Shown in pieces: positions 24,565-44,973 of a stretch of 64,000 bases of DNA. A program made the position numbers and the translations under genes. The stretch lies in the sequence record OR805293.1; one strand, written 5' to 3'. Each line of letters starts with the position of its first letter. Positions within the stretch are counted from its first letter, which is position 1. Under the pieces are notes generated by a model. That model was not told the DNA's origin. It made no database searches and worked only from the letters and a program-made list of their open reading frames with translations.

Positions 24565-25176
24565 TTGATTAAGTTAGTAAAACCCATTGCATATTATGGA
24601 CAGAAATTTGGTATCGCTGTTTCGGGCGGTATTGATTCTATGGTTGCATTGTCCTTCTTAAAGAAATATCCACAAAATAACTTCGATGTCTTTCATGTAA
24701 ACCACGGATCGGAGTATGATATCAAAGCAGAGCAATTTGTGAGAGATTATTGCAGCGACAATAAAATAAATTGCCATGTATACTGCATTAACACAAAAAA
24801 ACCAAAAGGTTGTAGTTGGGAAGAACATTGGCGAAACGAACGATATAAATTTCTTCACTCTCATGAATTAGAAATCATGACTGCACATACACTAGACGAC
24901 AACGTAGAGACGTGGTTGTTTTATAGTATGCACGGTTCGCCTCGTATCATTCCGTATCGGAAAAAAAATGTCATCCGACCGTTTATGCTTACTACAAAAA
25001 ACGAATTTAAAAAATATGCGAAAAGTAATGGTGTACAATGGTTAGAAGATCCTAGTAACCGAGACACCAATTTTAATAGAAATCAAATTCGACATAATAT
25101 AATTCCTCAAGCACTTAAAGTAAATCCAGGATTGTTTAAAGTGATTGCAAAAAAAGTAAGAGAAGAGAATGAATAA
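24565..25176 (+). CDS. tilS: tRNA(Ile)-lysidine synthetase, N-terminal catalytic domain only
   Basis: PP-loop AVSGGIDS, HVNHG, RNERYKFL, TAHTLDDNVET, IRPFM, WLEDPSN, RNQIRHNIIP. Confidence 0.93.
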   Translation: MIKLVKPIAYYGQKFGIAVSGGIDSMVALSFLKKYPQNNFDVFHVNHGSEYDIKAEQFVRDYCSDNKINCHVYCINTKKPKGCSWEEHWRNERYKFLHSHELEIMTAHTLDDNVETWLFYSMHGSPRIIPYRKKNVIRPFMLTTKNEFKKYAKSNGVQWLEDPSNRDTNFNRNQIRHNIIPQALKVNPGLFKVIAKKVREENE

Positions 25177-25284: not shown

Positions 25285-25632
25285 ATGAATACTATAATAA
25301 CGCTAAGTGCTTTGCAGGAAACAATACAAAGAGACGAATGGTCAGACCGCTATCATTTTGTTATTAAAGATAGGTATGGTAGTGATATATTGTATTGTAT
25401 AGAATACGAAAATTCATTACAGTCGTGGTTTATAGACTATACATATAACAATAGTTTGATATACTTAGATATATTTAAAATTCAGCTATTAACACAAAAA
25501 ATATCATCTTATACTAGTAACAGAACAGTAGTATTATTATCAGACAGTATCTCGAATGTAATTTTATATTACGAAATAGCAAATGATAGTATTAGTAGTA
25601 AAAATTATTCATCCGAAATAGTATTAACATAA
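25285..25632 (+). CDS. array small protein
   Basis: ORF track; family-like. Confidence 0.55.
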   Translation: MNTIITLSALQETIQRDEWSDRYHFVIKDRYGSDILYCIEYENSLQSWFIDYTYNNSLIYLDIFKIQLLTQKISSYTSNRTVVLLSDSISNVILYYEIANDSISSKNYSSEIVLT

Positions 25633-25845
25633 CTGAATGTATTTTAGTATAAGACCATAACGCACCCATTTGCATTTAAATTCCAAACTAAAACTATAAC
25701 CTCTTTATGTATATTCTTATTATTGCAATTCTAGTAAAATCTGTACAACTATTACTGAGTTAGATGTACAGGACAAAGAACAGCAAAATGCTTGACTATC
25801 CATTCGTGTTAGGTTAATTTAACAAAATTATATAAGGTATTTTAA

Positions 25846-26178
25846 GTGTTTATCATTAAATTACAAAGCAATTGTGACAAAATAGAAATAGATAACTCAA
25901 AATACAATTACGGGTTTTTTATTGTTAACTCAGAAAACATGAAAGTATTCCATTACAGTAACAAAGAATCGTCTTTGTATTCTATGTTTGCAAAAAATCT
26001 ACATATCAATGTATTTTTGGTGTCTACCTTGTGTTGTATTATATGTTTCGACTATCCTACTTTATACTTAGAAATGGAATCAAACCGTGCAGTAGCATTA
26101 GGTATAAATCCATGTTTCTTAAATATAGATGTACAAGGTTCTCGGTTCCATAATTGGGATCCGATGTGTTTTGTATAA
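25846..26178 (+). CDS. array small protein
   Basis: MFIIKLQSNC start. Confidence 0.6.
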   Translation: MFIIKLQSNCDKIEIDNSKYNYGFFIVNSENMKVFHYSNKESSLYSMFAKNLHINVFLVSTLCCIICFDYPTLYLEMESNRAVALGINPCFLNIDVQGSRFHNWDPMCFV

Positions 26179-26226
26179 ACATGTGATATAATTTGTGTTT
26201 AGTCATTTCTTAAATAAGGTATCGAA

Positions 26227-26568
26227 ATGAAAGAAAACAATATACTAGAAATGCAAGCAGGATGCTCAAACGTGGCTGTTATAGGTAACAGTGTTATAAG
26301 TATAGAAGGATTATATGACAAACCAACAAAAACATTAAACTTTTTTGTAAGATATAATTTAAACCATGATTCAGAGTACTTATCATACATTTACACATTT
26401 AAAAATGATATATGTGTACTGTCTTTATCTAGTAAATGTTTTATGATTAAAATAGCCCCAGAGGTGTATTATAAAACTAGATCTGTATGTATTATTAATA
26501 ATATAGGAAGTGGATTGTTATATAGTTACAAAAATCACACATGGGCTCGGACATGCGTTCTAATATAG
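26227..26568 (+). CDS. array small protein
   Basis: NILEMQAGC start. Confidence 0.6.
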   Translation: MKENNILEMQAGCSNVAVIGNSVISIEGLYDKPTKTLNFFVRYNLNHDSEYLSYIYTFKNDICVLSLSSKCFMIKIAPEVYYKTRSVCIINNIGSGLLYSYKNHTWARTCVLI

Positions 26569-26900
26569 AAAAAATTTATTATATTTCTAAAAATACACGA
26601 AGTATAAAGGTAATGGACCATACAATCACTATATGGTCGTTATATATTTCACCTAATATTACTATAATTTTATGGGCAACTAATTTAACTACAGGATTAT
26701 GTACCTTAAAATATAAAAATGAATTCAAAATAGATTTATTTAAATTAGTCAATACAGTGTATTATATAGAAAACAAATATAGAAACAGCACATATGTATT
26801 AAATGATGTATTGCACAATACTATATGCTCTGTGGGTATATTAAGACCCCGTATTGCAGATGAAGTATATTGCAGATATAGAATATCGTATGTCAGCTAA
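26541..26900 (+). CDS. array small protein
   Basis: ORF track. Confidence 0.55.
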   Translation: MGSDMRSNIEKIYYISKNTRSIKVMDHTITIWSLYISPNITIILWATNLTTGLCTLKYKNEFKIDLFKLVNTVYYIENKYRNSTYVLNDVLHNTICSVGILRPRIADEVYCRYRISYVS

Positions 26901-27049
26901 CATTACATATATTGTATCAATTACTGCTAGATGCACATCTATATATGAAGATGCGTATAGTGATTTCGTTATATTTTGTATAGCAGATGTATTTGGTAGT
27001 TATATAATTCAATATATGACAGAACGCAACAATAGGTTTATAGCTGTAT

Positions 27050-27358
27050 ATGAATATACATTTTCTACAATATGATATGTCTGATTCAAGTATATTATGC
27101 AATATAACAAGATATTCGTATACAATAAGACTGAGTCATTTTGTTATATCCGGAATGGGTAGGCCTATAACAAAAGTTGTATCCAGTATACTGTGTACTC
27201 CTATTCATATAATAGATGTGTGTAATGTTTCGCATCGTGCAAGAGATACGATTTTTTCGTACAATGACACCCAATTACGCAGTTCTTTGCATTTGTTTTC
27301 TATATCATTTTGGAAGTTAAAAGCATATACTATGATAAACGTATCCTACATAATATGA
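27050..27358 (+). CDS. array small protein
   Basis: MNIHFLQ start. Confidence 0.5.
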   Translation: MNIHFLQYDMSDSSILCNITRYSYTIRLSHFVISGMGRPITKVVSSILCTPIHIIDVCNVSHRARDTIFSYNDTQLRSSLHLFSISFWKLKAYTMINVSYII

Positions 27359-27849
27359 TATTTCAAAAACCATTTATAGAATTAAATAGTATCCCAGATT
27401 ACACTCATCCGGGCGGATTTGCATACCAACGAAAAAATCATATACACGAAGGCGTAGACCTTTATTGTAAAAATAAAGAACCTGTGTTTACAATGTTATC
27501 GGGTAAAGTAGTTAATATAATAAAAGATTTTACAGGACCGGGGTGCGGAACACCTTGGTGGAATAAAACAAGTGCAATAGTAATAGAAGACGTATTCGGT
27601 GTATGGGTATACGGCGAAATATTAGTAGGAAATTGGATTAACATAGGAGATACTGTACCAGCTGGAACATGTATCGGCAGAGTAGAACAAGTGTTAAAAA
27701 AGAACAAAGGACGTCCTATGTCTATGCTTCACGTAGAACGATATACAAAAGGAACTACAAATTCTATTGGATTATGGCAATTAAATACTAGCAGACCTGA
27801 AAATTTATTAGATCCAACACCTTTGTTACGGCGTATCATAAATGAATAA
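27355..27849 (+). CDS. M23-family (LytM-like) peptidase
   Basis: HEGVDLY (HxxxD), MLHVE, LDPTPLL; ATG 27355 overlaps upstream stop. Confidence 0.85.
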   Translation: MIFQKPFIELNSIPDYTHPGGFAYQRKNHIHEGVDLYCKNKEPVFTMLSGKVVNIIKDFTGPGCGTPWWNKTSAIVIEDVFGVWVYGEILVGNWINIGDTVPAGTCIGRVEQVLKKNKGRPMSMLHVERYTKGTTNSIGLWQLNTSRPENLLDPTPLLRRIINE

Positions 27850-28183
27850 TATATTATATATTCAGAATTTTATAAGAAGTAGAAAATTAGAAGCAGAATA
27901 CGGATGTATAGTTACCATTAATAATAATACAGGAGCTAGAGAATTTACAGCATATCATCTCAAAAACTGGCATAATTGTTCATTTATATCCTATAATAAT
28001 TGCAGTATAGATATTATTGCATTATGTAACCATACACACACGATAGCATATGGAGCAGATAATGCAAGTTTTATAATAAAAAATAATAACAGAAATATAC
28101 TACTGTCAGTAGTTGGTACGAATATGACATATTCGTCTTGTTATTCATCTTCTGTAATTATAAATATTTCTGTTTTATTATAA
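27842..28183 (+). CDS. array small protein
   Basis: MNNILYIQ start. Confidence 0.6.
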   Translation: MNNILYIQNFIRSRKLEAEYGCIVTINNNTGAREFTAYHLKNWHNCSFISYNNCSIDIIALCNHTHTIAYGADNASFIIKNNNRNILLSVVGTNMTYSSCYSSSVIINISVLL

Positions 28184-28184
28184 A

Positions 28185-28508
28185 ATGAATTTAATATTTT
28201 GTATAGCTAGCATTGATAATATACAAATAGGTATAGACCGGTCAATCGGACATATAAACAATATAATATATATTCGAACTAGCCCCTCTAATGATATAAT
28301 CAAATATATAACAGAAGTAAAATATGGTAAAACAGTATCACTTATGTTAAATCTCGATACATCAGTATTTAAAGAATTATTTATTTTTATTTTGTCATGT
28401 AAATGTAAACACATCACTGAACTAAGAATATACGATAAAGTAGTATTTTATTTTTATTCTGATAACAGAAGATCTTTAACAGATTTGTTATATTACATAG
28501 GTCAGTGA
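28185..28508 (+). CDS. array small protein
   Basis: MNLIFCI start. Confidence 0.55.
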   Translation: MNLIFCIASIDNIQIGIDRSIGHINNIIYIRTSPSNDIIKYITEVKYGKTVSLMLNLDTSVFKELFIFILSCKCKHITELRIYDKVVFYFYSDNRRSLTDLLYYIGQ

Positions 28509-28620
28509 CAGTACATTTACAGAAAAATATAATATCTTATGTATTATTCATTATAAAAACTCTGTTGTGTTATTAAGTGTTGTATGTTAGTGTGCAAGTT
28601 AATTAAATGCGGAACACCAA

Positions 28621-28914
28621 ATGGATATTATTCTTTTTATATCAAATAATACATACTATATAATATCAACGAGTAATAGCACATTCTTATTATACAGATT
28701 TGATCAAAAATGTATCTATGTTGCAACAAAAAATCTTAATTCACATCCGGTAGTGATAGACGACGGAAGTAATGGCTGGGGGACAATATATGAGATTCCC
28801 GCACTAGTTCAGTTTTACACAGATATTTTTAAATTTTCTGTGCATCACGAATTAATTCAAATATATGTGCTCACAAAAGTAGGTCAATTTTTCTCTAAGA
28901 TTGTTACTTACTAA
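28621..28914 (+). CDS. array small protein
   Basis: MDIILFISNNT start. Confidence 0.6.
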   Translation: MDIILFISNNTYYIISTSNSTFLLYRFDQKCIYVATKNLNSHPVVIDDGSNGWGTIYEIPALVQFYTDIFKFSVHHELIQIYVLTKVGQFFSKIVTY

Positions 28915-29236
28915 TATAATTGTACAATACATAGGTAATTTGATGGACAATATATTTTATATTTCGTACGAGATAGCTAGTTGCCGGTATTCTAGTCCAA
29001 CTACATTTCAATTAATTAATAAACACAATAGAGAATTTTATGCAATACGTTTGGCTGCAGGATACCCAAGCGACATTTTCGATTTTGATTGGAAACAAAA
29101 AATCTTATTAACGTCTAAATATTGTAATAAGCTTTTATTTCTTATTAGTAGAGAAAAGATACAGGTAACTACCAAGTTAAGGATATTTTATTGCCTTAGT
29201 AACGTATCTGCTAAATCGGATCAAGTTACACTATGA
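28901..29236 (+). CDS. array small protein
   Basis: ORF track. Confidence 0.5.
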   Translation: MLLTNIIVQYIGNLMDNIFYISYEIASCRYSSPTTFQLINKHNREFYAIRLAAGYPSDIFDFDWKQKILLTSKYCNKLLFLISREKIQVTTKLRIFYCLSNVSAKSDQVTL

Positions 29237-29457
29237 ATATCATACCATTAATTTTAATTAGTGTATACTAGTTATTGTGACACTATTAAATATGTCAATT
29301 AGATAAAATAAATTATTAATGAAAAATCTATTTCCTACCGGATGCATATTTAATATATTGGTATTATCTTATCACACAGATACAATATATGCTGCATGTT
29401 ACTCAGATTGTCGTGTTATTGCACTAAACAGTTATTATACATACTATATACCTTTAA

Positions 29458-29718
29458 ATGACTAAATTAATACTTACAATTTCTATTAATACCAAACAGA
29501 TAGCATTATTAAACGATGTTGTGCATTTTCGAAATTATAATAAAGCGGTATACTTTATAAATTTTTTATCTAAATCTAAGTCATTAATTATTGTGGACGA
29601 GTTAATAACAGATAGTTTTATTATCTTTTATATAAGTGAAAATTGTTCCGAAATTTATGTCACCCCTAGATATGCTTTTATATGTAATTTCGATGGGGTT
29701 GGGTTTTTTAGATCATAA
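29458..29718 (+). CDS. array small protein
   Basis: LILTISINT start. Confidence 0.55.
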   Translation: MTKLILTISINTKQIALLNDVVHFRNYNKAVYFINFLSKSKSLIIVDELITDSFIIFYISENCSEIYVTPRYAFICNFDGVGFFRS

Positions 29719-29749
29719 CTAGTTGTGTTAATTAGGATAACTATACTTA

Positions 29750-30043
29750 ATGAAATATGATTTTATATTACATATGAGTAATAACACAAATTGTATTATA
29801 TTCGACACAAGTATTACCTTTGTTGACAACAAAGGTATATTCTTTTATAAAATAATACCAATACACTTGCATGGTATGTGTAATTTTCCTTATATAGATA
29901 ACAGTTGGTCAAACTATATTTCATTACCTATAATTATACAATATTATACAAATAAACTGGTATATTTACCGTCTATTATACTTTTTCGTCAAAATAAATC
30001 TAATATATCAGCAGATACTGTATTTCGTACAAATATGTTATGA
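29750..30043 (+). CDS. array small protein
   Basis: DFILHMSNNT start. Confidence 0.6.
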   Translation: MKYDFILHMSNNTNCIIFDTSITFVDNKGIFFYKIIPIHLHGMCNFPYIDNSWSNYISLPIIIQYYTNKLVYLPSIILFRQNKSNISADTVFRTNML

Positions 30044-30321
30044 ACGATGAATTAATACTATTGTTAAGTAAAGAGACTTATATAACTTCATTTTCTCATA
30101 ACTGTGTAGACTTGTTCAGCGCTGCTGGAATTATATTTTATAGCATATCTATACCATACATGGGTTCCCGTGCTGCTAGCAGAATACATCATTTATATTT
30201 GTGTGTGTTTACACTATCTCCTTTTATAATACAATCATTTTGTCGTGTAATATTCGATAATAAGTATACAATTGGCATAGCACATAATGGCACACTTATA
30301 TGGAAAGGTCTTTACCAATAA
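30040..30321 (+). CDS. array small protein
   Basis: ELILLLSKET start. Confidence 0.6.
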   Translation: MNDELILLLSKETYITSFSHNCVDLFSAAGIIFYSISIPYMGSRAASRIHHLYLCVFTLSPFIIQSFCRVIFDNKYTIGIAHNGTLIWKGLYQ

Positions 30322-30390
30322 CTTTTTCAGTTGCTATAACATGCACAATGTGCAATAATAAAAAACAATGTGCAATTGTGAATAAAATAC

Positions 30391-30696
30391 ATGAATATTA
30401 TCATTAACATTCAAGCATCAACATCCGAAATCTTCTTTGATACAGACTGTATCTCGTTAATGACTAGCTTAAGCGGTTATGTTCTTTCGATAAACCGAAG
30501 AACAGGAAAAGGCGCAGTTGTACTTCATAACATAAAGTTAGATTCCATATATCGTATTCTACTATTACAGCACACAACTACATCACTTGTTGTATGGGGT
30601 GCTATAGACATTAAAGTATCATTTAAAGACATAGCCGATGAATACATTTTCCTTGCTATAGGAAGAAGATATTATCACGGCGAATGGTTAAAATAA
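30391..30696 (+). CDS. array small protein
   Basis: MNIIINIQAST start; ILLLQHTT in second half. Confidence 0.65.
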   Translation: MNIIINIQASTSEIFFDTDCISLMTSLSGYVLSINRRTGKGAVVLHNIKLDSIYRILLLQHTTTSLVVWGAIDIKVSFKDIADEYIFLAIGRRYYHGEWLK

Positions 30697-30965
30697 TTCT
30701 GACTATGCATAAAATTTATTATGACGAAATTTTAGAAATATCTAATAAAGCTAGATTAATTGTAATTTATTCTGGCATATGTTCTATATACGCAAAACCT
30801 TCTGTTTATTATAATGTAAATTATAACTTTTATAGTAATCCATTTAGTTTGTGGAATAGGGCAGTATTTATAGCATCTAAACAATGCGGGTACATAGCAT
30901 TCACTGATAACCGGGTGCGTATATTAACTGATAAAAAAATAATGTGGTATTATAATTATCTATAA
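30684..30965 (+). CDS. array small protein
   Basis: ORF track. Confidence 0.5.
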   Translation: MVKIILTMHKIYYDEILEISNKARLIVIYSGICSIYAKPSVYYNVNYNFYSNPFSLWNRAVFIASKQCGYIAFTDNRVRILTDKKIMWYYNYL

Positions 30966-30980
30966 GGTATAGATCGAAAA

Positions 30981-31289
30981 ATGGTATATAAAATACCGAA
31001 CGACAAGTGTATGTTGTTAATATTTCTGAGTAGTATAGCTGATACTATATCTATAGAAATCAGTTTTAGAAAAAGAATTAGAAAATGTTTGTACACACTA
31101 AAAATATACAAAGGTGATAACAATTGCATATTTATAAATGGCGTACTATTATTTAAAAAAGTTATATGTAACGATATGATAATTCCTATTTTGATACAAT
31201 CAGTCACAAGATCAATATCAATGCATAACGACTTCTTAGAAGTATTTTCTAACAAATATTATTTGACGTTATTTAGAAAAATGACATAG
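30981..31289 (+). CDS. array small protein
   Basis: ILIQSVT in second half. Confidence 0.5.
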   Translation: MVYKIPNDKCMLLIFLSSIADTISIEISFRKRIRKCLYTLKIYKGDNNCIFINGVLLFKKVICNDMIIPILIQSVTRSISMHNDFLEVFSNKYYLTLFRKMT

Positions 31290-31309
31290 TCTTAAATGGG
31301 CAAAAATGC

Positions 31310-31561
31310 ATGATTGTTATACTTCTTTCACACTTTACACATGAACTAAATGCACAGTTTAATGAATTAGAACTTACTGTGTATGGTAATAGATTAGCGC
31401 AAATATATCCAACAGCATTTATAGATACTAACATTCTATGGCATTATATGAGTAAACCTAATTTCTTACTATTTTATATTTCTAATAATGCAAAAACGAT
31501 AAAATTAAACCATTCGCCCCGAATATTATTATATAACTCTCCCATACCTCACTATATTTAA
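31310..31561 (+). CDS. array small protein
   Basis: ILLSHFT start; FYISNNA in second half. Confidence 0.55.
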   Translation: MIVILLSHFTHELNAQFNELELTVYGNRLAQIYPTAFIDTNILWHYMSKPNFLLFYISNNAKTIKLNHSPRILLYNSPIPHYI

Positions 31562-31593
31562 AAAGATAAGTAGCTGAACTATCATTTAAACAG

Positions 31594-31950
31594 TTGTTGT
31601 ACAGAAACTCTTTTAATGAGCAGGTTAATGTCCATCTAAACCCTATGTGCAACCTACCATTTATTATATCAAGTAATTCCCACAAACTAATCTACGGACA
31701 GTATTTTAACAATACAAGAGGTCCAGGCATATACATTGCTAATATAAATGGATTTGTGTTTCTATACTCAGTTGTTACTATTTCTAATTTTCAAATATGT
31801 TTTAGTATGCTTAACGAAATAGATCCTTTGTATTTGCAATACAAATGCGATTCAATAAAAACAATAAACACACTTATGTATTATAGACTAAATGTCAATT
31901 CATTACTTAATACAATGTTATGTAAAGAATATTATGAATTTAATACTTGA
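31594..31950 (+). CDS. array small protein
   Basis: LYLQYKC in second half. Confidence 0.5.
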   Translation: MLYRNSFNEQVNVHLNPMCNLPFIISSNSHKLIYGQYFNNTRGPGIYIANINGFVFLYSVVTISNFQICFSMLNEIDPLYLQYKCDSIKTINTLMYYRLNVNSLLNTMLCKEYYEFNT

Positions 31951-32218
31951 ATTATTAAGAAACACTAGTAAAATCATACCGCTTGATGGTCTAAATGCTG
32001 CTAGATTTATTCTTGTAAATACCCATTATATAAAAATAGCATCTTTTTGTTTATCATTTTCTACATGGACCTGCCAGACATTTTTAAGTATAAACCAGTT
32101 TCAAATGTCAGAATCTACGTTAGTTATCATATCTAATAAAATAAAGAAGATCAAAAGAGTAAAAAAATCATACGCTTTAGTTTTTGACGAATCATATATT
32201 CTGTTGAAAATCAAATGA
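31934..32218 (+). CDS. array small protein
   Basis: MNLILELLRNT start (ATG 31934). Confidence 0.55.
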   Translation: MNLILELLRNTSKIIPLDGLNAARFILVNTHYIKIASFCLSFSTWTCQTFLSINQFQMSESTLVIISNKIKKIKRVKKSYALVFDESYILLKIK

Positions 32219-32469
32219 TAATACATATCTCACATTTAACACATATAATAAGTGTATATTCTAAATATATAATCGTTACTAATAAAGCTAATGAAATTAT
32301 ACTTTGCAATTACATATATAACCAAACTAAAATTTACATTAGCAAATTATTACTAAATATCGATTTAATCTGTTATATTCAACATAACACAAAAACTATT
32401 AGTTATCCCATTGTACATAGCCATTTTCTAGCGTATCCATATCTTTGCAATAATGCCTTGGTTGTATAA
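32215..32469 (+). CDS. array small protein
   Basis: ICYIQHNT in second half. Confidence 0.6.
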   Translation: MIIHISHLTHIISVYSKYIIVTNKANEIILCNYIYNQTKIYISKLLLNIDLICYIQHNTKTISYPIVHSHFLAYPYLCNNALVV

Positions 32470-32471
32470 TT

Positions 32472-32759
32472 ATGGATTTTATTTTCCTACTACAACATAA
32501 CACTTCTATTATATTATTTAATAATATATCATATGGTAGTATAGAATTATACACAAAAGACGAAGTTCCAGTATTAGACATAGAAATATCAAATTCTATG
32601 TACATATATCAAGGTAATTTTAATGACAAAACTGCAATACTCCATCTACAGCAAAATACACACCAGATACAAATAGATATAGATATTATAAAAATGAGAA
32701 ACATGTACTATAAAGACATTTATTATATTGTATTACATGGATTATATGGATTATATTAA
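32472..32759 (+). CDS. array small protein (recent duplicate A)
   Basis: MDFIFLLQHNT ... ILHLQQNT. Confidence 0.7.
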   Translation: MDFIFLLQHNTSIILFNNISYGSIELYTKDEVPVLDIEISNSMYIYQGNFNDKTAILHLQQNTHQIQIDIDIIKMRNMYYKDIYYIVLHGLYGLY

Positions 32760-32825
32760 ACTTATCTCCGCAGAAGTAAATCAAATATATCCATATCTTG
32801 TCAACAATACTTTGGTTATATAATT

Positions 32826-33107
32826 ATGGATTTTATTTTCCTACTACAACATAACACTTCTATTATATTATATCGTAATAGTATTATAGAATTATACACA
32901 GAAGACGAAATGCCAGTAATAGACATAGATATAACAAATTCTATGTTCATATATCTAGGTATTTTTAATGACAAAACTGCAATACTCTATCTACAACAAA
33001 ATACACACACGATACATAAAGAATCATCAAATTCTTATTATATGATAAGAATGAGAAATATGTACTATAAAAACATTTATTATATTATAACACATGGATT
33101 ATATTAA
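32826..33107 (+). CDS. array small protein (recent duplicate B)
   Basis: MDFIFLLQHNT ... ILYLQQNT. Confidence 0.7.
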   Translation: MDFIFLLQHNTSIILYRNSIIELYTEDEMPVIDIDITNSMFIYLGIFNDKTAILYLQQNTHTIHKESSNSYYMIRMRNMYYKNIYYIITHGLY

Positions 33108-33378
33108 ACTTATCTCTTCAGAAGTAAATCAAATTAAAAAATCCACCCACCCCGGTGGCACCCGCAACGGCTTAACACTATATAACGTACATGACCAACC
33201 TATAATAGAAATAAAGATCCAAAAAATAATATCCCGTGCATATGTGCGTGCAAACTACGATAAGTTGTGTAACGAAATTTGCATTCTTTATATACAAAGT
33301 CAAACAACTTCAATATCTACCACACGGAACTCACTAGTAATCTTTACTTCCCACTATATAGTTCACTCTATCATATGA
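33094..33378 (+). CDS. array small protein
   Basis: ILYIQSQT in second half. Confidence 0.65.
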   Translation: MDYIKLISSEVNQIKKSTHPGGTRNGLTLYNVHDQPIIEIKIQKIISRAYVRANYDKLCNEICILYIQSQTTSISTTRNSLVIFTSHYIVHSII

Positions 33379-33647
33379 ACCTAATCCCCGCACTGCAACA
33401 TAAAACTAGATATATATCCCAATTTGATACTACTTATCGTTTAATTAACTCAGATAGAAAATGCTTTTATCTTATAACACGCAAGAACAAAAAGACCACA
33501 GTAGACATAGACTATAATATCTTCAATGATATTTTCGGTATATTACATTTACAGTCTAAAACACATATACTAAGACGTTCATATAACGTAATACAAGTAC
33601 ATGATGTATATTCTAATTTAACACATTTTGCCATAGCTCGGCAATAA
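33375..33647 (+). CDS. array small protein
   Basis: MNLIPALQHKT ... GILHLQSKT (ATG 33375). Confidence 0.65.
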   Translation: MNLIPALQHKTRYISQFDTTYRLINSDRKCFYLITRKNKKTTVDIDYNIFNDIFGILHLQSKTHILRRSYNVIQVHDVYSNLTHFAIARQ

Positions 33648-33653
33648 CCATAA

Positions 33654-33935
33654 ATGAAATTTATTATAACATTACAATCATACACAACTACAATACAGTT
33701 TCTAACTAATGATTTTATATTATATTCTGATAGAAATAGATTATTAGAATTAGGTATATACAATAACAAATTCAACTGTTACATACATATCAATAATTTT
33801 AATAATAACAATATAATCATGTGTTATCTTCAGCATATAATTTATACAATACACATTCATCCCTTTGTTTTATCGATGTGTAATAGTAATTGGTTATCAG
33901 TTAATACAAAATGTTATTCAAGAAGACTTTACTAA
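33654..33935 (+). CDS. array small protein
   Basis: MKFIITLQSYT ... CYLQH. Confidence 0.65.
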   Translation: MKFIITLQSYTTTIQFLTNDFILYSDRNRLLELGIYNNKFNCYIHINNFNNNNIIMCYLQHIIYTIHIHPFVLSMCNSNWLSVNTKCYSRRLY

Positions 33936-33974
33936 AGCAATGAAGATGAATGATAGAAATCACTACACTATAAC

Positions 33975-34370
33975 TAATGAGTGATAATACTCTAATAGAT
34001 AGAAACTATAGTGTACAAATAATGAGTGATAATACTAATAGAAGCTATAGTATACAAATAATGAGTGATACCAATAGATGGTGAATAATGAGTGATACTG
34101 AGTGATACTAATAAGATAGTGATAGTGTACAAATAATGAGTGAATTATATAGTACATATTTCGGTGAATACTGATATAATATCAATAGATAGCTATAGTG
34201 TACAAATAATGAATGATAATACTAATAGATAGTGATACTGACAGATAGCTATAGTGTACAAATAATGAGTGATAATACTGATAGATACTAATACTAATAC
34301 TGATACTAATAGATAGCTATAGTGTACAAATAATGATTGAATTATGTAGTACATATTTCGGTGAACCCTA
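33975..34370 (+). repeat. iteron-like modular direct-repeat array (candidate replication origin)
   Basis: CTATAGTGTACAAATAATGA-type copies at 34006, 34045, 34120, 34193, 34249, 34317; TGAATTATRTAGTACATATTTCGGTGAA at 34141 and 34338. Confidence 0.85.
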
Positions 34371-34394
34371 ACATCACCAAAGAAAGAAGGACCA

Positions 34395-34600
34395 AAATTT
34401 TGGAAATCTTGCTCTATAGGTCCCATTCATTTTCTTCCCAGTTACATTTATATTCTTTCCATTTCTAACCATTTTTATAGATTTTTTTTGGAAAAATCCG
34501 TTTTCTGCTATATAGGTCCCTCCTTATAAAATATAAGTTCTTTTTCAATAAAAAATATTTTTTTTTGAAAATTTCCAATTCTTGCTATATAGGCCGGTTT
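34395..34600 (+). repeat. three spaced TGCT[AC]TATAGG[TC]C motifs after T/A tracts
   Basis: Copies at 34408, 34505, 34581. Confidence 0.7.
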
Positions 34601-34743
34601 CATTATATATTCCCGTTTGCATAACATATACGGAATATAGTATGCTATACGTATATAAACCGTGACTCTAGACAACTCACTTACTGTACGCTTGTTAATA
34701 TAATTCCATTTCGTAGTATAACGTATATACAGGAAAACTAGTT

Positions 34744-35016
34744 ATGGATCTGATACTATTTCTTCAACATAGTACTGTAGAGATGGACTATAGTGAATGG
34801 TACATTCGTCTTAACAACAAGAATGAAAAGCATATAGCTATGATTACAGATAACGGTCTTAGACTGTATTATAGAAATATCAATGGCTTACTTGGTATTC
34901 TTCACTTACAATACTGTAATTATGATTTTTTATTCAGGTATATGGGCAGTTATATTTCTTTTACATTTGTTAATAATAATAGGTTTGTACATGAAACATA
35001 TGCTGATTTGAAATAA
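34744..35016 (+). CDS. array small protein
   Basis: MDLILFLQHST ... GILHLQYC. Confidence 0.7.
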   Translation: MDLILFLQHSTVEMDYSEWYIRLNNKNEKHIAMITDNGLRLYYRNINGLLGILHLQYCNYDFLFRYMGSYISFTFVNNNRFVHETYADLK

Positions 35017-35019
35017 TAT

Positions 35020-35325
35020 ATGGATTTCATACTATTACTTCAATCTCATTGCAATGAGATTGTATATACCAAACAAATCATTGATATGCTCAATGCGCAT
35101 AATAGGCAGTTCGTATATGGAATTACGTTGCCTATGGGAAGAAAACATGTATCATATGATGCATATTGTTTGTATAATAATTTATGTGATGTGATAGGAT
35201 TATTGCATATGCAATCTATTCTATCATTAATAGAAGTTAAACATTTAAAATCATTTTCTGGTAAAACAGATATTATTGTTAATATGGTGTTTGCTAACGG
35301 TTTTCTTCAATATGCTATATTCTAA
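35020..35325 (+). CDS. array small protein
   Basis: MDFILLLQSHC ... GLLHMQS. Confidence 0.7.
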   Translation: MDFILLLQSHCNEIVYTKQIIDMLNAHNRQFVYGITLPMGRKHVSYDAYCLYNNLCDVIGLLHMQSILSLIEVKHLKSFSGKTDIIVNMVFANGFLQYAIF

Positions 35326-35341
35326 TAGTTGTGTCTAATAC

Positions 35342-35626
35342 ATGGACTTAATATTATTATTTCAGTCTCGTTGTTGTAAGATTTGGTATTCAGATTATAT
35401 TATAGATATGATCGACTATAGTGATTATACTATAGTATCATTACTACGCCCGCCGAATGGGCGTATGTATGCCTATTGTTCGTGTAACAATATAAACAAC
35501 GAAATTAGTATAATGCATTTGCAGAATAGCATACATTCATTACAAATAAGTTATAGTACCCGTTCTATAATGTGTCGTATGACTAATGTGTATGAAGATC
35601 TAATTCAATATATTAGTATACTTTAG
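35342..35626 (+). CDS. array small protein
   Basis: MDLILLFQSRC ... IMHLQNS. Confidence 0.7.
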   Translation: MDLILLFQSRCCKIWYSDYIIDMIDYSDYTIVSLLRPPNGRMYAYCSCNNINNEISIMHLQNSIHSLQISYSTRSIMCRMTNVYEDLIQYISIL

Positions 35627-35628
35627 TA

Positions 35629-35904
35629 ATGTATTTTATCTTGTTTATACAGAAATTGTGTTGTTCGATTAGAAGGGCTTCACATGGATTTGATATTTTT
35701 GATACAAATGAAGTAGCATATTCATTAATAGATCATCATGGTTTCAGTATGAAACATTTCGTTTCATACTCTGTTATAAATGATGTAATAGGAATTATAC
35801 ATTTACAAGTGCATACAAATAAGTTATATTTTCTTCATGAAAAACATCAAATGGATATGATTTGTTTTCTAGATAGTAAAGGCGGTCATTTTTTTAGTTT
35901 GTAG
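35629..35904 (+). CDS. array small protein
   Basis: MYFILFIQ ... GIIHLQVHT. Confidence 0.65.
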   Translation: MYFILFIQKLCCSIRRASHGFDIFDTNEVAYSLIDHHGFSMKHFVSYSVINDVIGIIHLQVHTNKLYFLHEKHQMDMICFLDSKGGHFFSL

Positions 35905-35916
35905 AGGGCAGAATTT

Positions 35917-36180
35917 GTGCTATTAATATTAATGCTTCAGCGTAATGTTGAATGGATTCTTTATATTGAATACGAAATTCGACTTGTTCTGCCCGATTAT
36001 AACACGTTATATTGTTTTCCAATTTATAAACAGAAAATTAATGGGTATCTAAATTGCTTTGTTATTAATGACATTGTAGGTATGTTTTATTTACAGTACA
36101 ATTGTAATGTTATATCATTTGATAGATTTAATGTTTTTATGATACTAAACCGCAATGACATAATAATTTATGGCCGGTGA
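35917..36180 (+). CDS. array small protein
   Basis: LILMLQRN ... GMFYLQYNC. Confidence 0.6.
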   Translation: MLLILMLQRNVEWILYIEYEIRLVLPDYNTLYCFPIYKQKINGYLNCFVINDIVGMFYLQYNCNVISFDRFNVFMILNRNDIIIYGR

Positions 36181-36476
36181 CTAGTATGGATATTATATTA
36201 ATCCTTAGCAATGAAGTTATAAGAATACAAGGTTGTTTTTATGATATAGAAACTTTACAAATAAGGTTCTTCAATAAATACGACTCAATATATTTTTGTA
36301 ATAAAATGGGAGGATTTGTTAACTATAAAACATTTCCTAATGAACTACTAAGTATAATTCATTTGCAGCAGAATACACACAGGTTAATAACACACAGTAA
36401 ATGTATATTTTTTGATAGTGTGGATTTTATTTCTATTCACTGGGAGACTTTGTTTGACACAAACGAATATGTATAA
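36177..36476 (+). CDS. array small protein
   Basis: MDIILILSNE ... IIHLQQNT. Confidence 0.65.
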   Translation: MTSMDIILILSNEVIRIQGCFYDIETLQIRFFNKYDSIYFCNKMGGFVNYKTFPNELLSIIHLQQNTHRLITHSKCIFFDSVDFISIHWETLFDTNEYV

Positions 36477-36720
36477 TGATATGAATTATATATTACTAAT
36501 TAGTAACCAGTCTAAATATATTTCGTTGAAGGCACTTGGATTAACTGTAAACACACGTGAACCAAGGTTAACTCATTATATTATATTTTAAATATGAACG
36601 AAGAATATGATATATTATATTTGTCTAATAATACTATGCAAATAACATTTCACTTTTCAGTATATTGTTTTTATGATAAAACTCGTAGTATTATATATTG
36701 TCAATAAGACAGAAATATAA

Positions 36721-37035
36721 ATGGATTTAATATTAACACTTCAACATAAAACTGTGCTAATATCTCAGTTTAGTGCATTATTTGTATTTCAAAATATAAA
36801 CAGTGATACTATATTTTGTTTGGATATAGGTAAACATGTATATTATTTTGAAATAATATTCAGGTTATATAATAATAAGAATGGCATGGTGTATTTGCAA
36901 CATGCCATTAATTCTATTAAGTTTACCCTTAGTTTATATTATCATACAATTCATGGATATTCTAGTATGCCATCTATATATATGTATGATAAAAAATATG
37001 CTATTGTACACGTACCATATGTTAGGAATACTTAA
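36721..37035 (+). CDS. array small protein
   Basis: MDLILTLQHKT ... MVYLQHA. Confidence 0.7.
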   Translation: MDLILTLQHKTVLISQFSALFVFQNINSDTIFCLDIGKHVYYFEIIFRLYNNKNGMVYLQHAINSIKFTLSLYYHTIHGYSSMPSIYMYDKKYAIVHVPYVRNT

Positions 37036-37334
37036 TGGATCTTATATTATACATTCAGTACAGTGCTCATAAAATAGAAACTGTTTATAAATCATATCTA
37101 TTTTATAGTAATAACTATTCACTTTATTACAGACTGTCTGTATATAAGAGATTATTGGTACCATCGGGTAGTGAATCATATGCAAGGGCTTCGGCTGAAT
37201 ATTCTGCTATTACAGACAAAATAGGAATTATACACTTACAATCGAAAACACACGCAATATTATTTGTTATAGACAGTATGTGCATTCACGACAAATCGTA
37301 TCAAACACTCCATTATATTATACTAAGGTCATAA
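37035..37334 (+). CDS. array small protein
   Basis: MDLILYIQYS ... GIIHLQSKT. Confidence 0.7.
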   Translation: MDLILYIQYSAHKIETVYKSYLFYSNNYSLYYRLSVYKRLLVPSGSESYARASAEYSAITDKIGIIHLQSKTHAILFVIDSMCIHDKSYQTLHYIILRS

Positions 37335-37433
37335 TGTTTATAAGTTTTATTCCGCCTGTTGCAATGTTGATACGACTACAATCAAATCTACATATTATCT
37401 GTTTTGATTCTGTTTATGATAGTATAGTGTTTT

Positions 37434-37715
37434 GTGATAAAGACTACGACGAAATACATTGCTGCTTATGGTAGCGTGTTTGCATTTAACGCAAAAACAT
37501 GTTATACAGTATTGTTTGTTGAGTATTTTGACATTGTTGTTTCTAAAAATCTTTTATATAAAGGATTAATATGCATAATATATTTAAATTATCATATTGT
37601 ACAAATATGTTTAAATTTAAAATATTATGGGATCAAAAAGTATACCTATGCTCGTTTATGTCATTGCGGTATACTACCCTATATATTTCTGCAGGTCGTA
37701 TCAGATAAATGGTAA
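37434..37715 (+). CDS. array small protein (possibly degenerate)
   Basis: ORF track. Confidence 0.4.
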   Translation: MIKTTTKYIAAYGSVFAFNAKTCYTVLFVEYFDIVVSKNLLYKGLICIIYLNYHIVQICLNLKYYGIKKYTYARLCHCGILPYIFLQVVSDKW

Positions 37716-40600
37716 CAAATATATTAGAATTAATGTATGTATGTCACCATACATATAATATAACAACTGACAGCTACTATAACATTTTCTTCTTAAATAA
37801 AAATAATAAAATTATCTTTGTTGTGTATTAAAACAAATGGGAATATTTCTCTTATCACGCAATACTTGTTATATTTGTGTTATACATGTCAGACGCATTG
37901 TATACAAGATTAAAATGTATGACAGACATGGCAATTATGTGTTTACAATTAATGTTATCTAAGAACATATTAAATTATATAGAATTTGGTTGTATGTAAT
38001 ACTGTTTAATAATGGCAACAGATATTGATAAAATAACATACATTTCATTTAACTCATGCTATATATCAGTTAATCGTTTTGGTGTTATTATATATTATGA
38101 GTACGGTAGGTTGATTTTATATGATGATACCCCCGGGATTATATAAGAACGTATTCTACATACAGTATAATGTACGTCATATAAGCATATATTATTTTGA
38201 TGCATGTGAATGTAATATATTACAAGTAGAATGCAATAATTTTCTTACTCTAACATATAAATTAAATGAAAAAACCAATAAGTAATGTGGTTGAATTATC
38301 GTTTAATACGCACTGGTTTAATACCAATTATATAGCTAGTGCTCACTGTTTAATACTTTATAATGCGTCGTCATATCCTATACATTATGTTCGTTTACAC
38401 ACAAACAAGCGTTAACACTTATGTCGCCGGTATCAATTTATAATATAGTTTGTATTCAACACTATCTTAATAGATGGTATACTAGAATATCCACAACAGG
38501 TATTAATGTGTATTCAGATTCATATGTTAGAATTAGAATAAATGTTCATAAATAAAAATATTATAAATTATGATATATTGCAGGTATCTTCATGCGCACA
38601 TATAATAGATTCATCGCTATGTAGCACGTATCTATTAGCATGCATTTATAATAGTAATGAAAAAATTATTATAATTAGTGTTGCATATCTAAGATGAATG
38701 GTATAAAAGATATAATAGAATTTTCATCGCATGCATACGAAATATGTGCCAATACAGCAAGACTTAGAGATATAGTATACTACTCAATACTCATAAAGGC
38801 AAAAGACGGTCTTGCATTTTATATGGTAGACTCGTTTGCATATATAACATGACCAGTATCCTTGAATGTTCTTACAATACTTCTAATATTATGTTTCGTT
38901 TTTGTAAAAACAGTGATATTTTAGTTGTGAACTTTCTAAACAAAAATGATGACATACATTTCATTGTAATAATTAGATACAAATATACATATCGTTAATT
39001 ACTAATACATAAGAGAGTAATAAATGAATAGAGCAGCAAAGAAAAATGTTTCTATATTTGTTATTCAGAATCATACTTTTAGAGTTCATGTTGTACGATA
39101 TGATCCTGCGAGAATTTCAATATATCTCTCACTTGTACATAATTGTGTTGCATCTTAAGAACTATATCTGTATAATGTAGGTTACATTTGCATGTATAGG
39201 ATTATCTTTCATATAATATATGCTTATTAACTATACGACATGTATTGAATTACTTTATAGTATTGTATGATTCGTAAAAATATAGTTCTAATATCACATA
39301 ACACGTCAAAAATAATATTAGAAAGAAGAACAAGCAAAGTATTACGTGTTTCTATATTTAAATCAATCGGAAAATACTACTACCATTATTATACAACGTG
39401 TGGGAAACTATAATGCAAGATCATCATTTCACTACACTGTTGTATATGTCTAATCGTGCAGATAGAATAAAGATTTTCCGACAGCCTTCCTGTCTTATTG
39501 TATATATTAAGTCAGGTATGTTATATATTAATAAACAATTCTTAAAATGTTAGAATATATAGATACTCTCAAATATAATTACATTTTAACTGTATGCAGC
39601 GGTGTAGAGTCTATATCATTTGAATCATTTACTAGATCAGTGATATCAGTTTCCATAATATATAATAATATTACTATCTTTCCGTGCCAAACTACACGAA
39701 CTATACTGTATGGTGTATAATCTTATTTTTATTTCTTTTAATGTTTCTTTAATTAGTTTTTCTATTTTTAATAAAACATTCGAAGTTTATATTTATGGAA
39801 AAATGTTATTGGTAATTTATTATACAGGACTGTATATATGTTAGATATATTGCTACGGTTCCAACGCAGAGTGGATACAATTAAGGTGGAGTTAATATGG
39901 CGTCACTTGCATTTTTATGAAAAAGCCGGCGAGGAGTTAGAGTTATTTCATATTATATTTCTGCCGCCCGATCACCGAAGTATTAATTAACAAAAACAAG
40001 TTGTATTTTTCGGCATAAAAATTTATGAATAAAGATACAAACAAAGAATCACCTATTATTAAAGAATTATATTTTATATTAAGATTGTAAGTAAAATAAA
40101 ATACTTTTAGAATCTAAAACTAAAATGATCGATTGGGTATTTAAATTGTCTGCTAGTTGCTACGAAATAGACGGACAACACAGTGAGTCAATAAGAATAT
40201 ATAATTCATATTGTCTTTTAGGAACTATACAATGTTATTGTGCTCAGTTAAAAATAAATTTATATAAATTTTAATATTGTGGGAAGAATTCTTTTAAATA
40301 GGCATACTATATGAATGATCTATTACACTACCAACTCACATTACGTTCCATATCTTTGCAGAAAGCTCTTTTTAAGTCAGGCAATGTGTATTACATTCTA
40401 ATTGAACGTAACGACAGCGGTAGGTATTCCCGAGATGTAAAAATACTTAAATGATATGCGTATATTTGTAATATCACAAAATTGTATGACTATCAGACTT
40501 TTTTATCATACATATTTCGTTAAAGATGTAAATTATGATTCAATTTGTGTATTATATAAAACGAATAGCAGAATTGTAATACATCCGAGTTTTACAGTAG
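37710..40600 (+). pseudogene. zone of fragmented array paralogs
   Basis: ~2.9 kb with no ORF >=60 aa but with family-like fragments, e.g. MVTNILELMYVCHHT at ~37709 (frameshifted) and MIDWVFKLSASC at ~40125. Confidence 0.6.
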
Positions 40601-40792
40601 ATGAATATATTCGATCTGTCTTATAATTCTTCATTTATTTTGATGAAATCGAATAGAATATACATTAGTGATAATAACAATTATTGTGTGGGAGCTACAT
40701 ATGTATTACCTGCAATAACGAAATATATACATCAAATATTCCATGTAAACGCTGCAATATATAGATTTTTAGATACAAGTATACTAGTATGA
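40601..40792 (+). CDS. short array-like protein
   Basis: ORF track; ATGA-coupled. Confidence 0.45.
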   Translation: MNIFDLSYNSSFILMKSNRIYISDNNNYCVGATYVLPAITKYIHQIFHVNAAIYRFLDTSILV

Positions 40793-40977
40793 AATTCAAT
40801 ATATTTAAATTGCAAAGAAGATGTCACATTATAAATTGTCATTTTTATGACATTCTTAGATTTTCAAAACCTACATATTTTCGAGATGCTGATAGAATAA
40901 CTATATTTTCATTAATAGGTACTAATAGTATCAGAATTTACGAGGATATGTATAAAGGATATGCACAAACCATATGA
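40789..40977 (+). CDS. short array-like protein
   Basis: NIFKLQRRC start. Confidence 0.45.
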   Translation: MKFNIFKLQRRCHIINCHFYDILRFSKPTYFRDADRITIFSLIGTNSIRIYEDMYKGYAQTI

Positions 40978-41258
40978 TTGAAATATTAATATTTTCGAGT
41001 GCTAGTGATTATATTAGTATAAGACATGATATGGCACGGCTATATAATCTTAATGGTGTTAGTGAATTAATATTTGTATCAAAACCATACAAATATATTA
41101 TATTAACTAATTTAAAAAATCATATAGGTATATTCTGTATTTCAAATATAATAAGCAAAAGGGTGATGGGAGATATTACTAGTAACGAATGTTGGGCTTA
41201 TCCTTGGCCTCCAGATACTGGCATAGATGTATATATTAATTTCCTGTATAAAAATTGA
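40974..41258 (+). CDS. array small protein
   Basis: EILIFSSAS ... GIFCISN. Confidence 0.55.
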   Translation: MIEILIFSSASDYISIRHDMARLYNLNGVSELIFVSKPYKYIILTNLKNHIGIFCISNIISKRVMGDITSNECWAYPWPPDTGIDVYINFLYKN

Positions 41259-42174: not shown

Positions 42175-42187
42175 GTATTCGGCCATT

Positions 42188-42444: not shown

Positions 42445-42450
42445 ATATAC

Positions 42451-44689: not shown

Positions 44690-44973
44690 ATTATATAACA
44701 GTGCAATTGATATTTTAAAATACAGTGTGCAATACATCTTACATGTATTAAAATTTGTGTGTTACTTATTTTGCATTAATGATTAATATACCTCTCATAC
44801 AGTACAAAACTCATACTATAAACAATTTGTTCGGGCGATCGTTCTCAAAATGTATACAAGTGCGAGATGACAATCTAATTTTACTTGTTAGTTTTTATAT
44901 AGAAGGTTCTAAATATAGAAAATTTGTATATAACAACCAATGCCTTGCCAATGCCTTGAAGGGATTTTAGTAT

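Follow-up and report, generated by a model that had tools for sequence, protein, structure and literature searches.

Terminal multigene families are a known feature of large linear double-stranded DNA (dsDNA) viruses. Two examples are the MGF110, MGF360 and MGF505 families of African swine fever virus (ASFV) and the terminal gene families of poxviruses. Phages carry early host-takeover clusters in terminal repeats, such as the pre-early genes of T5 and the host-takeover module of SPO1, which are composed mostly of unrelated single genes. The locus described here is a tandem array of small genes in the genome of Pseudomonas phage Deifobo (OR805293, 288 kb) that is built from a single family. 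The stretch analyzed, hereafter the window, comprises 64,000 nucleotides (nt) of one strand; its coordinates are used throughout and equal the coordinates of the OR805293 record minus 124000. A 6-kb piece of the window (32000-38000) is 100% identical to Deifobo and 92-95% identical to ten further records of PA5oct-like jumbo phages (genus Wroclawvirus), all of which infect Pseudomonas aeruginosa. In the annotation of every record, the open reading frames (ORFs) of the family region are listed as hypothetical proteins. The interpretation favored here, to which a probability of roughly 0.6 is given, is that of a multigene family specific to Wroclawvirus and located at a terminal-repeat boundary, which would encode small early, non-virion proteins in which a helix-strand scaffold occurs twice and the remainder diverges freely.

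The tandem gene family and its distribution

The family is real, and its members are genuine genes and not chance ORFs. A first-pass annotation of the window, made from the letters alone, had pointed out a recurrent N-terminal motif in consecutive small ORFs, and this motif stood up to counting. The 11-residue pattern taken from it (h-h-x-h-[QS]-x-x-[TCSV]-x-x-I, where h is a hydrophobic residue) occurs 52 times in the three + frames, 41 of them inside 25285-41258, compared to five times in the three - frames. A hidden Markov model (HMM) profile built from clear members and run on the ORFs of the window recovered the family on the + strand only; made from the 12 clearest ORFs (32472-37334), it recruited no ORF of the - strand and none among shuffled ORFs. 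In a leave-one-out profile test, 24 of 26 members were found at E<1e-3 and all 26 at E<0.02. Applied to the whole window, the 26-member profile detected 30 ORFs at E<1e-3 (26 full-length members and four fragments) and 37 at E<1e-2, a threshold that was passed by one - strand ORF and by no shuffled ORF. The conserved motif positions are encoded by varied synonymous codons (TTR and CTN for Leu, ATA, ATT and ATC for Ile, CAA and CAG for Gln), which places the conservation at the level of the protein and not of a DNA repeat. A DNA-level repeat or promoter in the guise of a protein motif was ruled out on this ground, as the synonymous codons come from different codon families.

Twenty-two full-length members make up a contiguous array (28621-37334) of about 9 kb, or 3% of the genome, and outliers at 12547, 13463, 40974 and 44779 bring the number of full-length genes to 26, all of them on the + strand, as had been proposed. 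The family proteins are 83-107 amino acids (aa) long and, except for one recent pair, only 10-30% identical to one another. The earlier estimate of roughly 40 members in 25285-41258 turned out too high, with 23 full-length members and three fragments in this interval. Membership is not demonstrable for the ORFs of about 110 aa at 25285-28508 (profile E 0.02-3), for which no Pfam or PHROGs match was obtained. At 37334-40977, the majority of the 22 short ORFs fit neither the profile of the N-terminal half nor that of the C-terminal half of the family; those at 37810, 39261, 40095 and 40441 alone match family profiles, weakly, and similarity among the 22 is absent at E<1e-3. The idea that these short ORFs are single half-domains or decayed copies was mostly ruled out, given that 4-6 of the 22 match weakly and that they are under stronger purifying selection. 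Outliers had also been announced at about 13, 15.7 and 24.4 kb: 12547 and 13463 (12.5-13.8 kb) were confirmed, the one at 15.7 kb is a weak fragment (E 0.0065) and the one at 24.4 kb was not recovered (E=0.4). The members are homologous, stand head to tail on one strand, bear traces of duplication and are real coding sequences, as is typical of a tandem multigene family.

A profile of 22 members was compared with 1.84 billion representative proteins and gave 23 hits, 21 of which correspond to the window or to other Wroclawvirus loci. The remaining two (P0012, 801 aa, and P0022, 674 aa) were ruled out as relatives, being translated tandem satellite repeats with many weak repeated matches. All 11 matches of a word-indexed protein search came from PA5oct-like phages, and no Pfam or PHROGs family matched the members. 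As the database matches are limited to Wroclawvirus, the family belongs to this genus alone within the sensitivity of HMMER. The family is previously undescribed. It is not mentioned in the PA5oct papers, and the words 'paralog' and 'duplicat' are absent from the 2020 paper (PMC7318152).

The recurrence of the motif in the middle of the proteins, likewise noticed in the first pass, was borne out by an alignment of the N-half profile with the C-half profile (P=5.6e-5 over 19 columns). An internal two-fold repeat is supported at the level of the motif and of the predicted secondary structure, and each protein carries twice a unit of about 20 residues, in which the hydrophobic stretch h-I-L-x-L-Q-x-x-T-x-x-I is predicted to form a helix that leads into a beta-strand. 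AlphaFold placed a helix (H) on each motif, followed by beta-strands (E), in the order H-E-E-E / H-E-E-E in model 1 and H-E-E-E-E / H-E-E in model 2. Model 1 (the 35342 member) reached a predicted local distance difference test (pLDDT) score of 62, and its Foldseek matches to glyoxalase-type modules and uridylyltransferases were discarded (E>0.1 at this pLDDT). Model 2 (the 33375 member, 33 sequences) has a pLDDT of 74.7 and a predicted template modeling score (pTM) of 0.61, with a pLDDT of 80-94 for residues 1-45 and of about 65 for the C-terminal half. No match was obtained between the family profile and the sequences of solved structures. The proteins are probably small alpha/beta modules, in which the two conserved units would form the hydrophobic core while the variable sheet and loops could diverge freely.

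Selection and duplication among isolates

Each Deifobo ORF was aligned with its orthologues in the syntenic 21-22 kb of the phages Callisto, Cassandra, Paride, Ettore, 30-3 and PAC2 and in both ends of PA5oct. Every variant was counted once, and omega, the rate of nonsynonymous relative to synonymous change, was expressed relative to a permutation null. The genes of the tRNA(Ile)-lysidine synthase TilS and of an M23-like peptidase served as controls and show 32 variants distributed 4:2:26 over the three codon positions, 26 synonymous changes versus 9 expected and no insertion or deletion (indel) of either kind. In the 23 family genes (6.5 kb), 715 variants were found (266:186:263), with 219 synonymous changes observed and 175 expected (p=1e-4) and with 17 in-frame versus 2 frameshift indels. 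The other ORFs at 24-32 kb, including the 25285-28508 block, contain 315 variants (108:109:98), 79 synonymous changes for 75 expected, and 9 in-frame and 0 frameshift indels. The short ORFs at 37.3-40.9 kb contain 240 variants (84:49:107), 96 synonymous changes for 58 expected and indels in a ratio of 6:1; they have a clear coding signature and are under clearer purifying selection than the family. All classes pooled, 32 in-frame indels compare with 3 frameshifting ones.

The reading frames are kept strictly. All 147 orthologue copies of the 23 members in the seven genomes are full length and have conserved starts. If the same base changes were placed at random, about 35 stop-gain variants would be expected in the family, and the number of truncated copies is zero. 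Eleven apparent stop-gain variants were an artefact of scoring changed bases singly; the actual orthologue ORFs are all full length. The flanking ORFs at 24-32 kb are untruncated as well (82 of 82 orthologue copies), despite variants that are spread evenly over the codon positions and synonymous change at the neutral expectation.

The 18 columns that are most conserved among the paralogs accumulate 0.086 nonsynonymous variants per codon among isolates, compared to 0.258 elsewhere, at equal synonymous rates (Fisher P=4e-15). The corresponding omega values are about 0.8 for all sites, about 0.3 for the motif sites and about 0.9 for the non-motif remainder. The motif positions are under ongoing purifying selection, and change is near-neutral in the remaining residues, roughly three quarters of the total. 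The proteins consist of a small constrained scaffold and a largely unconstrained remainder within a strictly kept reading frame. The amino acid composition of the family and its neighbors is close to that of a random translation of the local DNA (Ile 14%, Tyr 8%, Glu 2.5%, Ala 2.6%), and their grand average of hydropathicity (GRAVY) is +0.19, compared to -0.36 for the long ORFs in the window.

Omega is heterogeneous among the paralogs (chi-square p=9e-6). Low values of 0.12-0.35 are found for the copies 28621, 30040, 35629 and 36186, and point estimates above 1, based on small counts, for copies near the 34-kb locus, namely 32472 (3.5), 34744 (2.5), 32826 (2.0) and 35917 (1.65). The value for 32472 partly reflects a paralog comparison, and no single-gene test survives multiple-testing correction. 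Diversifying selection had been proposed in the first pass. As a pervasive force it gains no support from the pooled omega or from the value at non-motif sites, and omega exceeds 1 for only four copies on few changes. Such selection is possible for the copies nearest the boundary.

The family grew by repeated tandem duplication on one strand and is now an old, stable feature of the genus and not a fast accordion. A recent trace of this process is a 354-bp duplication at 32440-33147, which gave rise to the genes 32472 and 32826 and also duplicated the first codons of the next gene. It is present in two copies in Deifobo, Callisto, Paride and Ettore and in one copy in Cassandra, 30-3 and PAC2. 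Between the two genes, 29.8 nonsynonymous and 3.2 synonymous changes were counted, a pN/pS of 2.1 that is not significant. Paralogs that are close neighbors resemble each other somewhat more than those farther apart (Mantel -0.25, p=0.003). Each of the seven genomes contains 22-24 full-length members in the same order, the 354-bp duplication being the sole difference. The birth-and-death scenario of the first-pass annotation therefore stands in part: the 354-bp duplication, the similarity of neighbors and the gradient described below argue for an expansion by tandem duplication, but no death of copies is apparent over the time that separates the isolates, all 147 copies being full length. The term 'accordion' does not apply, since near-identical copies in widely varying number are absent; the seven genomes have 22-24 copies, and the paralogs are 10-30% identical.

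The terminal-repeat boundary, expression and translation

Bases 1-39080 of the PA5oct record have double sequencing coverage and were read as 39-kb direct terminal repeats with 105 genes (PMC7318152). Base 1 of PA5oct corresponds to window position 34375, which would thus be the left boundary of a 39,080-bp direct terminal repeat. The array straddles this position: 15 members precede it, at the right end of the unique sequence, and nine contiguous full-length members come first inside the repeat. Similarity to the family fades with distance from the repeat locus at 34.2 kb, as had been noted in the first pass (Spearman -0.75, p=4e-5); the consensus-like copies adjoin the boundary and the more diverged copies lie further out.

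The repeat locus itself (34006-34340) consists of six copies of a 24-nt core, which occurs nowhere else in the window, separated by irregular spacers of 15-50 nt, and ends 34 nt before 34375. The Deifobo and Paride records label it 'CRISPR' (34039-34336 in Deifobo). It looks like a terminus-associated repeat, such as a packaging or end-recognition site, and not like a CRISPR array. Three copies of an element of about 16 nt (consensus CTTGCT-A/C-TATAGG-T/C-CC, one copy without the first T) were found at 34395-34600, spaced by 76-103 nt. They sit in a non-coding gap of 800 nt between the repeat locus and the first gene in the terminal repeat, where small - strand ORFs are annotated.

In PA5oct, gp450 and most genes from gp34 to gp105 show high transcription at 5 min after infection and count as early genes, and early transcription proceeds almost exclusively from the Watson strand (PMC7318152). 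The gp numbers equal the locus tags in this part of the record, as the M23 peptidase is both gp441 and EST35_0441. EST35_0450 is 89% identical to the product of 30391-30696, so that one family member is the orthologue of the highly transcribed early gene gp450. A 69-nt gap with a TTGCTA-17-AATAAT site, which is a consensus match only, lies ahead of the 30391 gene. A scan for sigma-70 promoters was uninformative in this DNA of 27% GC content, with 185 sites compared to 166 expected. In the PA5oct record, proteins of the virion are marked by an ESI-MS/MS note (tandem mass spectrometry after electrospray ionization), and none of the members carries this note. Packaged internal proteins with an N-terminal targeting peptide, similar to the internal proteins of T4, were rejected as a candidate, given the missing virion note and the recurrence of the N-terminal motif in mid-protein.

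The weak ribosome-binding signal and the tight spacing of the genes reported in the first pass were both reproduced. The mean Shine-Dalgarno pairing energy is -1.6 kcal/mol, whereas long ORFs reach -4.1 and random positions give -0.4 to -1.0, and 47 of 63 junctions overlap or have gaps of at most 20 nt. With such ribosome-binding sites and overlapping or abutting junctions, most members are probably translated as coupled chains. In a chain of this kind, a nonsense or frameshift mutation in one copy would silence everything downstream, and truncations would be purged far more strictly than missense changes because all downstream copies would be lost with them. The proteins most likely have an early accessory role in the interaction with the host and are neither structural nor junk.

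The GC content is about 30% across the window and reaches its minimum of 26-28% in the family region. The most conserved Ile of the motif (position 4) is encoded by ATA in 14 of 22 family copies. A phage gene for TilS lies at 24565-25176 (PP-loop family match, E 1.7e-36), and 12 tRNA genes, three of them with the anticodon CAT, are located upstream of the family region at 14757-18956. From the ATA usage of the family and the presence of these genes it is conceivable that translation in the GC-rich host may depend on phage machinery. The M23-like peptidase gene (27310-27849, also given as 27355-27849; Pfam E 3e-5, below the curated cut-off), which corresponds to PA5oct gp441, interrupts the block of ORFs of about 110 aa upstream of the array and, unlike its neighbors, is under strong purifying selection. 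At 42000-44000, 50000-54000 and 62000-64000 the GC content rises to 45-55%, compared to about 30% for the genome; these GC-rich islands lie within the region that is most strongly transcribed early in PA5oct. The ORFs 43303-44007 and 62506-63018 resemble each other, and so do their antisense ORFs. The coordinates of the family and of adjoining features are compiled in Table 1.

Table 1. Family members and adjoining features in the window. E values are from the leave-one-out profile test unless stated otherwise; omega is among isolates.
Feature	Position	Strand	Evidence or remark
Outlying family member, 107 aa	12547..12870	+	E 2e-5; linked pairwise to ORF 27842-28183
Outlying family member, 101 aa	13463..13768	+	E 3.3e-5; database protein P0019
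Flanking block of ORFs of ~93-115 aa	25285..28508 (also 28943-29236, 30684-30965)	+	profile E 0.02-3 for 25285-28508
Sigma-70-like site GTGACA-17-TATAAT	28505-28533		just upstream of member 28621
Family member, 97 aa, first of array	28621..28914	+	E 3e-5; omega ~0.12
Family member, 86 aa	29458..29718	+	E 3.8e-8
Family member, 97 aa	29750..30043	+	E 6.5e-5; closest paralog 28621
Family member, 93 aa, ATGA overlap with preceding stop	30040..30321	+	E 4.7e-6; omega ~0.20
Family member, 101 aa, orthologue of PA5oct gp450 (EST35_0450)	30391..30696	+	E 3.8e-7; 89% aa identity
Family member, 102 aa	30981..31289	+	E 6.2e-6
Family member, 83 aa, weak	31310..31561	+	E 0.0019
Probable degenerate member, 101 aa	31645..31950	+	E 9.8e-4 against 26-member profile, in which it is not included
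Family member, 94 aa	31934..32218	+	E 5.7e-4
Family member, 84 aa	32215..32469	+	E 8e-9
354-bp tandem segmental duplication, two units	32440..33147	+	nucleotide alignment, ~88% identical
Family member, 95 aa, first of recent duplicate pair	32472..32759	+	E 1.2e-15
Family member, 93 aa, second of recent duplicate pair	32826..33107	+	E 4.3e-16
Family member, 94 aa	33094..33378	+	E 2e-9
Family member, 90 aa, best-scoring copy, structure model 2	33375..33647	+	E 3.1e-18
Family member, 93 aa, last gene ahead of repeat locus	33654..33935	+	E 4.2e-13
Non-coding repeat locus, six copies of 24-nt core	34006..34340	+	tandem-repeat finder; six matches, 0 expected
Position matching base 1 of PA5oct record	34375		carried over to Deifobo from PA5oct
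Family member, 90 aa, first + strand gene within terminal repeat	34744..35016	+	E 7.8e-10; omega ~2.5, P=0.049
Family member, 101 aa	35020..35325	+	E 6.8e-13
Family member, 94 aa, structure model 1	35342..35626	+	E 6.6e-15
Family member, 91 aa	35629..35904	+	E 1.7e-11; omega ~0.20, P=2e-4 (excess synonymous change)
Family member, 87 aa, GTG start kept in all 7 relatives	35917..36180	+	E 2.2e-14
Family member, 96 aa	36186..36476	+	E 3e-9; omega ~0.35
Fragment, 48-aa open frame, one motif unit	36561..36707	+	full profile E 5e-5; matches both half-profiles
Family member, 104 aa	36721..37035	+	E 1.7e-10
Family member, 99 aa, last of array	37035..37334	+	E 1.5e-12
22 consecutive short ORFs, ~40-80 aa (mean ~48), mostly overlapping	37334..40977	+	PA5oct gp11-gp33, just upstream of the gp34-gp105 block
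Fragment or half-size relative, 50-aa frame	37810..37962	+	N-half profile E 1.9e-6; full profile E 2e-4
Distant family member, 94 aa	40974..41258	+	E 0.019; detected in 7 of 7 genomes
Short outlying member, ~63 aa, start codon uncertain	44779..44970	+	E 1.3e-4; motif at 44788

Competing explanations and known systems

Several points weigh against the interpretation as a family of small early, non-virion proteins at a terminal-repeat boundary. Gp450 is the sole member named as transcribed in PMC7318152, with gp2-gp10 just outside the gp34-gp105 block, and the members are known here from the DNA sequence and from the transcription of gp450, not as proteins. Translational coupling was deduced from gene spacing only, the boundary position was carried over to Deifobo from the coverage analysis of PA5oct, and the similarity gradient may partly stem from central copies that dominate the profile. 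Confidence in the structure models is moderate or low (pLDDT 62 and 74.7), the second half of model 2 being weak. Barely functional ORFs, too, would show near-neutral change at most residues, a random-like hydrophobic composition and weak ribosome-binding sites.

The first-pass annotation had envisaged decoys or inhibitors of host defence sensors that are diversified by positive selection in an arms race and turned over by birth and death. The extreme divergence of the paralogs with their nearly unconstrained non-motif positions, the omega values above 1 near the 34-kb locus (34744, 35917 and the duplicate pair), the one copy-number difference between isolates, the early transcription of one member and a PA5oct annotation without a known anti-defence gene would all fit such a scenario. 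It is nevertheless judged unlikely. The pooled omega is below 1, and none of the single-gene tests withstands correction; furthermore, an intact one-to-one orthologue of each paralog is present in PA5oct and in isolates collected in Switzerland, Thailand, Japan and Spain, from which a slow turnover of the family is deduced, and the family lacks similarity to any known anti-defence protein. A further, rather unlikely reading is a 'protein nursery' at the genome end, in which duplication at the boundary would make copies, coupling would keep their frames open and two stretches of about ten scaffold residues would stay constrained while the rest drifts under expression, providing a standing supply of new small binding proteins. 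If true, many near-random ORFs would be held under selection for openness and not for sequence. Another view, distinctly unlikely, holds that the region is translated filler. The only purpose of open frames would be to let ribosomes trail the polymerase along a long early operon, so that polarity and Rho-dependent termination are avoided, and their functionless products would come along with DNA that sets the genome length. The absence of truncation in all 229 copies of family and flanking ORFs alongside an omega near 1, the uniform distribution of the flanking variants over the codon positions, the random-like composition, the weak Shine-Dalgarno signal and the tight or overlapping junctions speak for this view. 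In the family proper, however, the motif codons are under purifying selection at the amino acid level and the motif is kept through synonymous changes, several copies have an omega of 0.1-0.35, and pure filler would conserve neither a peptide motif nor fixed start and stop positions. For the ORFs at 25.3-28.5 kb, translated filler is a live option.

Neutral junk, that is, a silent reservoir of decaying duplicated DNA with chance ORFs that pads the genome, had been offered as the other explanation in the first pass. It could account for the 26-28% GC content, the composition of a random translation, the overall omega near 1 and the lack of relatives beyond the genus. At the local base composition, however, about 8% of random codons would be stops, and open runs of 85-105 codons on one strand that cover 89% of the region do not arise by chance. 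Neutral junk is also contradicted by the zero truncations where about 35 stop-gains are expected, by the indel ratios (17:2 in the family, 32:3 overall), by three-fold fewer nonsynonymous changes at the constrained motif codons (P=4e-15) and by the high transcription of the gp450 orthologue. It is excluded for the family proper, and as an account of the region it is extremely improbable. A last, very unlikely proposal builds on the predicted fold and sees in the family an array of MotA-like 'double wing' DNA-binding modules related to the C-terminal domain of T4 MotA, which would perhaps recognize different DNA sites of phage or host. The best Foldseek matches of model 2 among solved structures are indeed to this domain (1kaf, 5jlt; E 0.03-0.09, probability 0.93-0.98), with a template modeling (TM) score of 0.46-0.50 over 81-83 of 90 residues, including the C-terminal half of the model at a pLDDT of about 65. 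In a viral structure library, the list was led by MotA proteins of T4-like phages and several proteins of phage G, none of them significant. The C-terminal domain of MotA comprises three helices with six strands interspersed (PMC2988021), compared to two helices and six strands in model 2. No MotA fold match reaches E<=0.001, though, TM does not exceed 0.5 and the model has low confidence in its C-terminal half. None of 33 members matched Pfam MotCF or YjbR even with E values of up to 10 allowed, and the profile-profile (hhalign) probability is below 1% both against T4 MotA alone and against an alignment of the MotA C-terminal domains of seven diverse phages, which was assembled from phage records after the word-indexed protein search had given only 2 matches. 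The family is also poor in Lys (5.1%) and Arg (3.4%), with a mean isoelectric point of 7.6. The predicted resemblance to MotA is therefore a weak lead only.

The favored interpretation, a genus-specific family of small early, non-virion proteins, touches upon the more general problem that the genomes of jumbo phages consist largely of genes without an assigned function; here, 3% of a genome resolves into one family. The strict upkeep of the frame combined with nearly free amino acid change sets selection for translation as such apart from selection on the encoded product. Wroclawvirus phages, including PA5oct and Paride, have been studied as phage therapy candidates. For such applications, it would be useful to know if the block is dispensable, affects the host range or is an early host-takeover module.

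Among described systems, the T4 MotA C-terminal domain (1kaf, 5jlt; PF09158) is comparable in its size of about 100 aa, in being a module of an early phage protein and in being the best, though non-significant, fold match. It differs in that MotA is a single-copy two-domain activator and not a tandem family, and the Wroclawvirus proteins are non-basic and have no sequence or profile similarity to it. With the 'genomic accordion' of poxvirus type the locus shares the generation of copies by tandem duplication, one recent 354-bp event differing between isolates. The accordion, however, relies on near-identical copies and fast expansion and contraction, whereas the Wroclawvirus paralogs are old and diverged, with an intact orthologue in each genome. 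The early clusters of T5 and SPO1 resemble the locus in the dense arrangement of small + strand ORFs within or beside the long direct terminal repeats of large virulent phages. Those clusters are transcribed early by the host RNA polymerase, and one member here is a reported early gene. In contrast to these clusters, one expanded paralog family occupies the locus, over half of its copies are located outside the repeat, and the repeat-internal copies (gp2-gp10) are not among the genes listed as highly transcribed in PMC7318152, while the early gp450 lies outside the repeat. The terminal multigene families of ASFV and poxviruses differ in belonging to other viruses than bacteriophages and in their unrelated sequences, and the copy number of the present family is nearly fixed at 22-24. 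The likeness lies in the architecture: in both cases, tandem, diverged and lineage-restricted small paralogs of non-structural character, with some variation in copy number, are gathered by the genome end or terminal repeat.

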